Shown here in pieces: positions 51,729 to 55,700 of a stretch of 64,000 nt of DNA (the first letter of the stretch is position 1; each line of letters begins with the position of its first letter). The notes under the pieces were generated by a model. It was not told the DNA's origin, did not search any database, and saw only the letters and a list, made by a program, of their open reading frames with translations. The stretch is from assembly GCF_040938485.1 (NCBI RefSeq), contig NW_027270951.1, forward strand, positions 1 through 64,000, in the 5' to 3' direction. Source of the stretch: Diadema antillarum. Its lineage: Eukaryota. Position numbers and translations under genes: made by a program.

Positions 51729-52600
51729 ATTATACAGTGATATCAAAACATGTCGCGTAGTTTTCAAATATAATTTCTCTAGAGGTAACATTTCCCGACA
51801 CCATGTGCTGTTCGTAATGTATTCCGCGATGCTTTTGTGAATGTATGGCAAATGCGATATTTTGATGTGCATTTTTTTTCTAAACTCATCATGACTTCGT
51901 GAGATTCACCGGGTTTTATGGTTTGATGGCTGGTGTGTGATGGCAAGCACGGATGTGTGAACCTGAGCGCCTGCGTAGCGTGTTCAAGTGGCCCCACGAT
52001 ATGATTAATGTTTGAGATATCATTTTAATGTCAAGGTGCACATTATGAATATACGATTCTAGTGTCGTTATACATGTCGGTATATGCAATGCAAATAACA
52101 TTGGTTACTGTATGAGACACACCCTATATGTGCAATATTGACGGTCTTCTATCTACATGATCTATGTCGTCAGGCGTCAGCTGCGAACAATGCCAGCAGT
52201 TATAGTTCTTGTTCATCAGCATACACAAATACAGCGGACTTCGGGAGCGAGTATCCACAAAAGGGGTAACATGCACTGTTTATTCTTTACGATTGTCATT
52301 GACCGAAATCTAGATTCACGCGTCAACGTCTCCTCAGAATAGGTCAATATAGCCGTATTATTAATAGGACCTAAATGGACATGTGTTCATATTCAGTCAC
52401 ATTTGTTTCTTGGGAGTAAACATTAGCCCATACGTGAGGTTTGGAAAGGACACATGCAGCATTCAATGTTTGTGGAGTTCTCGTGGGTGTAGAGAACTTG
52501 GTAGAAAAATGATAAGGTTTATACAGTGCCACCCCTCCCCCCCCCCCCCTCCCCCATAATACAAGACATACCACTGCCACCATCACTACCTTACTTCTAC

Positions 52601-52659
52601 CAGTGTCTACCAAGGAGCTTGAGGCTCCTTGCTTCTATCATGGACCTACAAGTTCCATG
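52601..52659. mobile_element. Two adjacent short palindromic insertions separated by copies of a CTTCTAY heptamer
   Basis: CTTCTAC|CAGTGTCTAC-CAAGGAGCTTGAGGCTCCTTG|CTTCTAT|CATGGACCTACAAGTTCCATG|CTTCTTG. Confidence 0.5.
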
Positions 52660-52693
52660 CTTCTTGTATATACCACCTCGACTGGGGCATAAC

Positions 52694-52732
52694 CAGGGAG
52701 GTGCCAGGGAGGTGAGACAAAATACCTCCCTG
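52694..52732. mobile_element. 39-bp palindromic insertion with perfect 7-bp flanking repeat
   Basis: GCATAAC|CAGGGAGGTGCCAGGGAGGTGAGACAAAATACCTCCCTG|GCATAAC. Confidence 0.65.
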
Positions 52733-55700
52733 GCATAACATCATGGACCTATACGGATACACCAACATCAATCTCATGGAAATCTCATAGCAGAGCTCGT
52801 GGAAAGGGGAGGGGGAGGGGGGGCTGTACAGGTGGAAGTGTGCGCAGTGGTAGTAGGGCCTATATTGCGCCCTGCTTCACTTTTCGAGTGGTTGAGGTCA
52901 GGTTAGCGCACTTTTTCGATGCCAGCCTGAAATCGAAAGCTCTCGTCTCAAGTAAGACATGATGAATATTGACACGGGTTGCCAAGTATGATGGCACGGA
53001 TATCGCTTCTAATACGCAACTTCCGCTATGATCCCTAATGACACATAGCATGTGCGAAGCTCAATAACAAAACGTAAAGAATTTTACACTTGAATGTAAA
53101 TCCTGTCAACAAGAATTATCCACACCTGCAAACTGACAGTTTTAAAACTTTCTGGGTACAACCTGAGAAATACAATAAAACAAAAGAACAGAATGAAAAG
53201 AAAATTAGAAGAACAACAACAAAAGAAGATAGCTTTGTTTGTTTGTGGGTTGTTTTTTTTTTTTTTGCATGATGACACTAAAAATTGATATTTGATAACA
53301 TAAAACATGGCAGCTTGTAATACATTCCTCATTTATTGAATCATAACTCAGGCCTACTTTATTCATCACTCTTTTATTTGTTCTTTTACTTATTCTTTAA
53401 TCTATATCTTTATTCATTCATTCTTTAAGCATCAATTTACAATTTCTTCTTTTAGCCATATATGCATCTATCAATTCAACGATGCTCACATATCAATAAG
53501 AATTTGTTTTGAACACATAAAGATTATAATATGCCCTACTGAGAAATGTGTGTGGCAGAATGTCGTATGGAACGGGTATGATAAGCAGGGATGCCCCATC
53601 TGATATAAGTCCATTCGCTTCCAACATGGACACACTGCTTTTGTTAAAACACGGTTTTCACTTCAAGGTAAAGTCTCTTATCTTTTGTATGATGCAGTTG
53701 TATGCAAAATTTGCTCACAGAAAACACAGGTATTGTGAATAATGTTTCCGTCGCAAATTCAGCGGTGGTTGATTGTAAAGCAAGCAGTTTACGTCGGGGG
53801 AAACTCCATAAACATCCCCATCAAATAAAGTAAACACAAACAGGGTATTCTTCGTGCAAGTCGTTCATGTCGCATACATTTTACCCATTTCGCAATTGAA
53901 AATGGCTGTCTTTTTCCCCGATTTGAATGTTTCTCCTACTTGATTGCGGCAAAATCGTACAGTACAATGCCATTATTTTTGAACTTCTGTAAAGTTGTCC
54001 ATGAACTATGCATGTTTCACTTGTATACCACTGTATAAACGTTTAAAGTTTTGACATTATTTATGGTCTCACAAATACAGGGGTCGTAAATGCATTCATG
54101 TGACTACTGCAGTGATGACGAAATCGTTACATTATTGCAAGCAGTGACGTCACACATCAAACCATGTAACTTATTCAAGAGTCTGACTTGGTGGCGACGG
54201 GCGAGAATGAAATGTGTATGTAGGCTATGTAGCCATATGATATAACAAATATTGCCGTGTCCATTCATATAACACTTGACAGTCCCTTATGGGAGTTTAT
54301 TTTTTCCCAAGACAATATTTTTCCCTCACACTGCTCGTTTTTGGGAAGATATAACTCCCTTGGTGATGTCAAGTCTTACATTATGCGCCTCTAAAAAGGC
54401 AATATGATCATAGCCATGACTTTATTTGCGACCCCATAAGAAAGCGGTCAAATGGCTACAAGCGACTGGGGAGAGACTAAAGGCGGTGAAAACACCTGTT
54501 CCTACGTATTGCCCTGTCATTTATGATTTTCTTTTACTTTTCTTTTGTTCAAGGTATGTCTTGTTTTCTCTTCGTCTTTTTTTTTCATAATGGCGTAAAT
54601 TCTTGTGTCAGCCTCTTTTTCTTTTTGTTAACTTGTTGATGTTATTTTCCCGAATGGAATGCACTCGATTTGAATTGGCTTTTGTTGACGGTGTCCAGCA
54701 AAAAACAAACTCGCTTGAAATGCCAGGTGTGCATTTTCAACACCTCAAAACAAACAAATTAAAGGCTTCGTTATTCGAGCAGATAGTGATAGTATTGTAA
54801 CTGGTTCCACCAGCATAAATCAGCAGTAAATACGCATTTTACGGTGGGCTTGTCATACATACAATGTGCATTCATGGCCGCTGAAAAGAGCATTGGGATA
54901 TGGAAGCACGAGTGATCGGTGGAATACAACTACTGTATTTTCTTTATCAAAAAACACGTAGCAATGCCGGTGATAGTAACAGGTATATAGACTATTGATA
55001 ACGTTTTTCGTTTTGTTTTGTTTTGTTTTGTTTTGTTTTTCACTGATCCATAACGACTGACATGACCATTGCGTTTTTCTAACCGGTTTAAGTAAGCATC
55101 AATATCTAAGACAAAAATTTATACAGAAAATTCATGTAAATCGTGCATCAGGCAAGATATATATTTATTCCCATGAACTACAGCCCAACATAAAACGGCC
55201 GTGAAAAAAAAGAAGAAACGAGACCAGAATCGCTGCAAAGGAAAAAGGTTGACGGAAGAGGAAATACGCACAACTCTTGTAAAGGAAAATGTAGACAACA
55301 GCAATCTCCCTACATGTTCAATGAAAAGTCATGAAACAACATAATTTCATATATTCAATTAGTCTAACGTACATGTTACTCTGTTGTTGCTTTATAGCGC
55401 ACATTGCGTAGTTTGACAAAATAAGGACATTGTTGGGGTTGTCTTTCTTTTTTTTCTGCCTTTTCCCCCTTCTGTTTTTTTCCATACGCTCATAAAAGCT
55501 ATGCTCATTCACTCTTTAGTTCGAAATTACGTGAAATAGCAAACGACATAAAGTTTTCCGTACCCTTTAATCCTCACGCACCACTCACTATAAAAAGCAC
55601 TGCACATGCCACAAATCAACAAACGTTCCAGTCATTGTTCTGATCAATACACCTGTTCAGTGTAGGTCATGGTTGACTAGGGAGGGGCGGGGTGGGGTGA

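Follow-up and report, generated by a model that had tools for sequence, protein, structure and literature searches.

A 170-base block in the window from Diadema antillarum (the whole stretch of 64,000 nucleotides that was analysed) is most probably a fossil stack of excision scars, left by at least three related cut-and-paste transposon families with 7-bp target duplications. Every element of the block listed in an earlier sequence-only reading was found at its coordinates by sequence check (Table 1), and the three types of ends noted there correspond to three related transposon families: they are the tips of the terminal inverted repeats, with CAnGGAssT in common. The layering of footprints at a single heptamer that had been proposed is supported for the two scars bounded by CTTCTAY, but the GCATAAC scar lies on a separate target; the spacing of 27 bp given for that scar is obtained when counting from the end of hairpin 2, whereas the gap between CTTCTTG and GCATAAC is only 20 bp.

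Table 1. Excision scars, target copies and half scars in the window (positions of the window; strand where assigned)
Feature	Positions	Strand	Remarks
Half scar, 15 nt of family-3 right-end tip	4281-4295	-	
Scar, 17 bp, CAGGGAGGTGG + TCCCTG, between CTTCGAG and CTTCGAA	18893-18923		
Scar, 38 bp, perfect ATTATAC duplications, decayed right arm	51684-51735		0.9 kb upstream of the block; both haplotypes
Heptamer copy 1, CTTCTAC	52594-52600		Outermost copy of the reused target; 6/7 vs shared CTTCTAT
CAGTGTCTAC = CAGTG + TCTAC	52601-52610		Candidate minimal scar, then truncated heptamer copy; judged from sequence only
Hairpin 1, putative family-1 excision scar, 21 bp, CAAGGAGC-TTGAG-GCTCCTTG	52611-52631		Tip CAAGGAGCTT...
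Shared heptamer CTTCTAT	52632-52638		Duplication on the right of scar 1 and on the left of scar 2
Hairpin 2, putative family-2 excision scar, 21 bp, CATGGA-CCTACAAGT-TCCATG	52639-52659		Tip CATGGACCTA...
Heptamer copy CTTCTTG	52660-52666		5/7 vs shared CTTCTAT
GCATAAC, left 7-bp target duplication of family-3 scar	52687-52693		7/7 match
Putative family-3 excision scar, 39 bp	52694-52732		Tips same as in full elements
GCATAAC, right 7-bp target duplication of family-3 scar	52733-52739		7/7 match
Half scar, 11 nt of family-2 tip (lone CATGGACCTA at 52742-52751), no partner arm	52742-52752	+	Repeat match
Perfect palindromic scar, 24 bp, tip CAAGGAGCTATT, perfect GGTATAG duplications	61958-61995		

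The outer heptamer copies in the window (n = 3) are imperfect, with matches at 4 to 6 of 7 positions; copy 1 agrees with the target consensus nTnnnAY. Its last 5 nt are repeated as TCTAC within 52601-52610, next to the putative 5-nt scar CAGTG, which is without family-level support. Hairpins 1 and 2 each carry one substitution, relative to the common family-1 21-mer and (G to T) to the common family-2 form, respectively. The family-3 scar starts with an additional left tip of 10 nt and a C, which are followed by 18 nt of left tip, a single T and 9 nt of right tip, with CAGGGAGGT at 52694-52702 and 52705-52713 and ACCTCCCTG at 52724-52732; its full stem of 12 bp pairs 52702-52713 with 52724-52735. 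The half scar, which follows the family-3 duplication at a distance of 2 bp, lies in a 12-nt exact repeat of 52637-52648, and shares 5 nt of its presumed target, ATAACAT, with GCATAAC. A minus-strand open reading frame at 52646-52777 was rejected as coding (short, without support and explained by the scars). A Tc1-like MITE that would end in poly-C and poly-G tracts plus TA was likewise dropped, as no other copies were found. An N run is present near 42.5-42.9 kb of the window.

Each of the three hairpins is one member of a family of very small palindromes that are joined tip to tip and dispersed through the genome. In the 1.75-Gb two-haplotype assembly, searched with the reversed pattern as control, 11,992 tip-to-tip palindromes fitted the shared tip pattern (148 in the control), and a pattern for one 10-nt tip gave 3,981 palindromes (control, 0). 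Regarding the motifs of the block itself, the 21-mer of hairpin 1 occurs at more than 60 to about 94 loci, the 23-mer of hairpin 2 yielded 21 matches and the motif of hairpin 3 (18-19 nt of left tip) 538 matches, with no match to the reversed pattern in any of the three cases; this occurrence is far beyond chance. For family 1, 380 sites of CAAGGAGCTT..AAGCTCCTTG were found (control, 0), with variable junctions and in many cases with 7-bp duplications, and the family tip was read from the longest scars as CAAGGAGCTTCAAACACA. Within the window, 18 tip 9-mers of the form CAnGGAssT were counted, compared with 3.8 in shuffles (maximum 9).

For family 3, the one covered in this respect, full elements with the tips and the duplication length of the scar were found. 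Two of them, at L046:8293-9864 and L047:8235-9883 (1,572 and 1,649 bp), have perfect 7-bp duplications, and the assembly holds approximately 80-81 full family-3 elements (162 tip matches), which are non-autonomous and roughly 1.6 kb long. A 4.7-kb copy was rejected as the autonomous element of this family, as it contains tandem repeats only.

Elsewhere, the same palindromes lie in unrelated flanks, with exact 7-bp direct repeats abutting both sides; the family-2 palindrome at L036 and L038-L042, for instance, has perfect 7-bp duplications. The 18 independent sites with a 7/7 duplication match gave the palindromic target consensus RTnnnAY, a signal produced in part by the search patterns; the unforced heptamers between stacked tips agree with it (position 2 is T in about 90% of them, and position 6 is A in about 86%). 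A preference for tip-like bases beside the target was weak or absent at the 18 sites. Inside the window, the perfect duplications are GCATAAC, ATTATAC and GGTATAG. Members of the hAT superfamily produce 8-bp duplications and are excised via flank hairpins that leave no tip remnants; this superfamily was rejected, as the duplication here is 7 bp throughout and the tips are kept.

Scar junctions vary from site to site and form a near-continuous spectrum. The scars at 150 sampled sites were 18-46 bp long; a single one was above 41 bp, though 48-50 bp were allowed. A simple exponential tail would give about 6-7 sites above 41 bp, which supports an arm cap only moderately. Scar arms overall measure 8-20 nt. 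In the nine family-3 scars chosen solely for at least 18 nt of left tip, the left arm ends at exactly 18 nt in eight and at 19-20 nt in one, and the inverted repeat of the family continues beyond this stop, to 30 nt. Recurrent scar products have palindromic microhomology centres (e.g., CTAG and CATG), and it is this palindromic microhomology at the joins that explains the recurrence of identical products. Variable junctions together with arms ending at about 18-20 nt are better explained by repair scars of a long staggered cut than by self-mobile micro-elements.

Such micro-elements would be palindromes of 20-40 bp that consist of ends only, moved in trans as MITEs, so that the stack would record their insertions and not scars of long elements. 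Both tips and perfect 7-bp duplications are indeed present, and some exact forms, such as the family-1 21-mer, recur often; however, a near-continuous junction spectrum differs from a few amplified copies, the recurrent forms are those expected from palindromic microhomology, and the stop of the arms also speaks against such units. Moreover, Drosophila P elements have their transposase binding sites in the interior rather than at the tip (PMC7776569); by analogy, a unit made of tips alone would lack them. This origin is considered very improbable. Somewhat more credible, yet still improbable, are internal deletions from aborted gap repair, in which synthesis stops early and the nascent ends anneal, with neither a long staggered cut nor a P-type transposase required. 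The common microhomology-centred junctions are in line with this, but the retained lengths should then be broad, whereas the long left arms of family 3 nearly all stop at the same nucleotide and the total length hardly ever exceeds 41 bp.

A third possibility is confined to the block: the 21-bp hairpins with their heptamers could be a diverged tandem duplication of a 28-nt unit, or the three hairpins could be under selection as a structured RNA or as a regulatory element. The 28-nt units share 71% identity and include one compensatory stem change, the region (321 nt) folds better than shuffles (z-score -3.6), and the block lies inside the longest haplotype-identical stretch, of 218 bp. That stretch is only marginally unusual, however (expected number 0.09), the period of 28 nt equals 21 + 7, and the hairpins match different dispersed families, each with its own duplications elsewhere, so that a diverging duplicate would have had to converge on the sequence of another family at 8 positions. 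Against a structured RNA stand the stem-breaking substitutions in both 21-bp scars and an Rfam search of 50000-56000, which gave no relevant match at E up to 1. Either version is regarded as extremely unlikely.

Under an origin of the block by excision, the insertion of an element would duplicate 7 bp of target. The exit would begin with a staggered cut by the transposase: the transferred strand would be opened at the tip and its partner about 18-20 nt into the inverted repeat, an offset that we infer from the arm lengths. A single-stranded copy of the tip would thereby be left on each donor flank. The tips would then be fused by end joining, in many cases at short palindromic microhomologies, into a palindrome of 20-40 bp between the target copies. 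The duplicated heptamer would still be a good target, and one of its copies could be entered by a second element, mostly from a different family that has the same target preference; this second visit would add one more heptamer and one more scar. The predicted outcome is the arrangement of 52594-52666, i.e., heptamer, scar, heptamer, scar, heptamer, possibly with an additional minimal scar on the left.

Reinsertion into a duplicated heptamer predicts tips at exactly 7 bp from each other, as was observed. Facing tips at gaps of 0-20 bp numbered 676 in the genome, compared with 118 in the control, and half of these pairs were exactly 7 bp apart (330, compared with 7 in the control). The gap of 7 bp is the genome-wide modal gap between two tips, and 52624-52647 is its instance in the window. 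Stacked pairs mostly join different families (same-family pairs 6 of 19, with 4.5 expected under random pairing). A stack of three scars was found on another contig (C95:1111146-1111203), with the heptamer GTCTTAC perfectly kept. The elements of a stack may have come and gone in turn, or may have sat side by side before excision. Reuse of the heptamer is far above chance and extends across families, and would fit intrinsically strong sites as well as scars that attract insertions.

The whole block is carried by both haplotypes, and neither showed an allele with a smaller number of scars. The presence of the full block on all haplotypes and in sister species had been named beforehand as evidence against layered footprints; as the block is complete on both haplotypes, with one substitution in each 21-bp scar, it is old, and an origin from scars is not contradicted. 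A derivation from a larger dispersed repeat was rejected, since a 381-bp query matched only the other haplotype. By contrast with the block, the scar at 61965 was found on just one of the haplotypes, the other reading GGTAG there, and a scar that differs between haplotypes indicates recent activity.

Assignment to the P superfamily is the most likely one, but is one that we infer, none of the transposase genes having been linked to the tips. In its favour are the duplication of 7 bp, a target that begins with GT and ends with AC as in Galileo, the long stagger of the cut and the abundance of P-type transposase genes in the genome. The RNase H domain of P transposases gave 79 matches in the genome, many of them in open frames of 600-984 amino acids. 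The P-transposase loci L050-L061, which are too short, showed no such tips or matching ends in their readable sequence, a comparison of P-transposase loci with the family-3 element showed no similarity, and an autonomous element with these tips was not found. A candidate tip at L061:290 was rejected because it lies inside another repeat, and no contigs encoding the L061 open reading frame are on record.

The mechanism is already known from the P element of fruit flies; the stacking statistics are what is new here. Drosophila P elements are cleaved with a 17-nt stagger (PMC7776569, PMC10983969), and their footprints, like the present ones, have a target duplication on both sides and end-joined inverted tip remnants no longer than the stagger. 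The differences are a duplication of 7 bp (8 bp in P), arms of up to about 18-20 nt (17 nt in P), a sea urchin host, and fixed scars that number in the thousands and come from several families. Tandem dimers of P elements arise by double insertion at one target, with a duplication common to both (McGurk and Barbash 2018, PMC5932611); as here, the ends are exactly one duplication length apart, the motif between them fits the target consensus and the site is reused. In the sea urchin, however, the elements are excised and only scars are left, the pairs are mostly between families, triple stacks occur, and the stacks are old and fixed, whereas the dimers are less than 100 years old. Galileo, a member of the P superfamily in Drosophila, makes 7-bp duplications with the consensus GTAGTAC, and the palindromic GT...AC consensus of Galileo, Kepler and Newton is comparable to RTnnnAY (PMC2775673); their tip sequences are unrelated to those found here, and family-3 elements are without long foldback repeats. 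The 1.6-kb family-3 elements are of the ordinary non-autonomous kind and resemble MITEs, being short and non-coding, with inverted ends and target duplications, but palindromes of 20-40 bp are too short and too variable at their junctions for an amplifying family. Footprints of Tc1/mariner elements at TA likewise contain element-end nucleotides left by a staggered cut, but keep only 2-3 nt per end plus the TA duplication.

From the genome alone, the scars reveal the cutting position (about 18-20 nt inside the ends) and the target preference of an uncharacterised echinoderm transposase. Target reuse, known from the recent invasions of flies by P elements, also acts over evolutionary time and between families, and the approximately 12,000 scars and 330 shared-heptamer pairs form, for a non-model animal, a data set on the repair of transposon-induced breaks and on hot spots of insertion. 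In annotation, hairpin clusters composed of scars should not be taken for structured RNAs or tandem repeats. It is conceivable, if rather doubtful, that the scars serve as landing pads, a heptamer abutting a tip or a cruciform-prone palindrome attracting insertions of the superfamily. Every visit would then leave behind a further target copy and a further hairpin, and hot spots would reinforce themselves; by such a ratchet, hairpin arrays would be built up from nothing, and regulatory or satellite sequence might be seeded.

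All motifs that the sequence-only reading had listed for the block at 52594-52760 were found in their places upon sequence inspection. The repeat finder returned three hairpins (see table), a 12-nt exact repeat, ATCATGGACCTA, with one copy at 52637 and the other at 52740, as well as the exact pair GGCATAAC; folding of the 321-nt region beats 100 of 100 shuffles (z = -3.6), and an Rfam search of the block region yielded no relevant match. Each hairpin is a member of a dispersed family. The 19-mer of hairpin 3 yielded 538 genome matches, the 23-mer of hairpin 2 yielded 21, and the 21-mer of hairpin 1 (up to two mismatches) about 94 loci, with 0 in each control, i.e., the same search with the reversed pattern (genome counts refer to a two-haplotype assembly of 1.75 Gb, distinct loci being about half). 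CAnGGAssT is common to all tips (the ends of the transposon inverted repeats). At other loci the palindromes have unrelated flanks and exact 7-bp direct repeats on either side, e.g., ATACAAT, ATCAGAT, ATTGTAT, GTCATAC, CAGATAC, GTTCAAC, CTTTTAT and GTAAAAT. The symmetrised target consensus of 18 independent 7/7 sites reads G/A then T (86%) at positions 1 and 2, and A (86%) then C/T at positions 6 and 7, and is partly forced by the search patterns; the heptamers from the stacking searches are unbiased and in agreement.

Features of the window and of related loci elsewhere in the assembly
Feature	Location	Description
Hairpin 1, family-1 scar	52611-52631	8-bp stem (repeat finder)
Hairpin 2, family-2 scar	52639-52659	6-bp stem (repeat finder)
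Hairpin 3, family-3 scar at 52694-52732	52702-52713 paired with 52724-52735	perfect 12-bp stem (repeat finder)
Scar	51691-51728	perfect ATTATAC duplications; on both haplotypes, 1-nt difference
Scar	18900-18916	
Half scar	4281-4295	
Scar	61965-61988	perfect GGTATAG duplications; absent from C491
Family-3 full element	L046:8293-9864	1,572 bp
Family-3 full element	L047:8235-9883	1,649 bp
Nested scar, L003	C1633:683606	
Nested scar, L004	C1633:651262	
Nested scar, L005	C634:621429	
Nested scar, L006	C634:595523	

Tip-to-tip palindromes of family 1 occur at 380 sites and those of one 10-nt tip at 3,981 (control 0 for both), and any CAnGGAssT tip with its complement after 0-30 nt at 11,992 sites (control 148). 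Junctions, frequent products, lengths and arm ends point to these palindromes being scars, i.e., excision remnants, and not micro-elements. The junctions form a near-continuous spectrum (e.g., 10+10, 12+10, 13+10, 16+10, 18+15, 17+11), and the commonest products match annealing at short palindromes within the tip, with centres CTAG, CATG or AAGCTT. A length above 41 bp was found at one of 150 sampled sites (48-50 bp being allowed), where an exponential tail predicts about 6-7. Among nine family-3 remnants, picked solely for at least 18 nt of left tip, the left-tip arm stops at exactly 18 nt in eight and at 19-20 nt in one, the inverted repeat running to 30. An arm end point fixed at about 18-20 nt would be the donor-flank residue expected of a long staggered cut.

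Regarding full-length family-3 elements, two loci have 1.5 kb in common downstream of the tip, and these copies have inverted repeats of 30 nt and sit between perfect duplications (GTTATGC and ATCAGAC). The 30-mer of the inverted repeat gave 162 genome matches, equivalent to about 81 elements, almost all of them about 1.5 kb long; tips-only remnants are several-fold commoner than full elements, because 538 matches compare with these 81. A non-autonomous element at L048 (C7:2730900-2735900) has grown to 4.7 kb via an internal tandem-repeat array; only tandem repeats were found inside it, and a family-3 scar of 27 bp, flanked by TTTGCAG duplications, lies at L048:4618-4644. No transposase linked to CAnGGAssT tips was found at the P-transposase loci inspected (L050-L061) or in this 4.7-kb copy. 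The P-transposase RNase H domain gave 79 genome matches, many of them in open reading frames 600-984 aa long. The P transposase of Drosophila cleaves 17 nt within its repeat (PMC7776569, PMC10983969), and the P-superfamily element Galileo makes a 7-bp duplication with the consensus GTAGTAC (PMC2775673); a 7-bp duplication and a GT...AC target are also seen for the sea-urchin scars. From the arm end point, the duplication, the target and the RNase H matches we infer that the scar families belong to the P superfamily.

The copy of the locus on another contig, C491, is collinear with the window on contig C63 (89-97% identity for over 20 kb, interrupted by numerous insertion differences), which fits a second haplotype. 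The haplotype comparison found the full block on both copies alike. Positions 52592-52810 (218 bp) show zero differences, the longest such run in 6.3 kb and only marginally unusual (expected number 0.09; rate elsewhere, 0.036 events per bp). Flanking the scar stack, a C-rich tract (52529-52556) and a G-rich tract (52806-52825) form an imperfect inverted pair (perfect over at most 13 nt, 94% over 18 nt); their lengths differ between haplotypes, the 218 bp in between being identical. By folding into G4 or i-motif structures, these tracts might contribute to the hot spot. Elsewhere, an element of about 1.1 kb (56366-57450) that starts with AAGAGACCCGCGGGTC and ends with GGTGAGCTAAAAA is absent from C491, and a related 1.5-kb copy occurs only on C491, opposite 45887; these copies are insertion polymorphisms between the haplotypes. 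Also restricted to C491 are a 581-bp element with inverted ends of about 35 nt (ACCTTAAAGGGAAGGTAAACCC...) and a 1.76-kb element, also with inverted ends, opposite 57842 and 62757. A run of 791 N lies at 42.5-42.9 kb of the window.

Tip 9-mers number 18 in the window (3.8 in shuffles), and a stretch of 1.1 kb (51.69-52.75 kb) contains six scars, compared with a genome average of one per about 146 kb for strictly defined scars. Opposite the scar at 61965-61988, C491 reads GGTAG (an untouched site would be GGTATAG); since this scar is absent from C491, activity went on after the haplotype split. Scars themselves can be hit, as shown by one family-3 palindrome that lies, flanked by GTGAGAC and GTGATAC, within another family-3 remnant; this nested structure has four copies, in units spaced 26-32 kb from each other, and is therefore part of a large duplicated segment.

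Within the block, the single heptamer CTTCTAT separates the family-1 scar from the family-2 scar, and the outer flanks of these two stacked scars are TGTCTAC (with CTTCTAC 10 nt farther out) and CTTCTTG. Both 21-bp scars carry one stem-breaking substitution relative to the common form of their own family, and the heptamers around them have drifted; the duplications and the stem of the family-3 scar are perfect. The extra 10-nt tip copy within the latter and the lone family-2 tip may reflect imprecise or templated repair.

The proposal that different families had reinserted into one duplicated heptamer, each round adding a target copy and a scar, predicts facing tips one heptamer apart, and these were found genome-wide: a right tip followed by a left tip after 0-20 nt occurs at 676 sites in the whole assembly (control 118), and at 330 sites the gap is exactly 7 nt (control 7), which is half of all cases and about 19 times the average count for the remaining gap lengths. 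A few recurrent pairs derive from a single repeated unit (e.g., those with the heptamer GTAAGGC). The heptamers between stacked tips match the target consensus (about 90% have T at position 2 and about 86% have A at position 6). Same-type tips were seen in six of 19 hand-typed pairs, with 4.5 expected by random pairing; reuse is therefore not one element coming back to its own site. Three scars of three families are stacked on a perfectly preserved GTCTTAC at C95:1111146-1111203, and stacked pairs also cluster regionally (e.g., three in 18 kb on C4, two in 9 kb on C58). A fixed 28-nt string (right tip, GTTTCAGGTG, left tip; 10-nt gap) recurs at many loci (C11:2099655, C19:2842671, C29:5568972, C30:1596173, C36:1092406 and C50:371533) and probably represents internal sequence of a repeat family into which two tips were captured. 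Dimers of the P element in flies result from double insertion at a single target, have the 8-bp duplication in common, and favour sites matching the target motif and the vicinity of promoters (PMC5932611). We read the block of the window as the excised fossil form of this behaviour.
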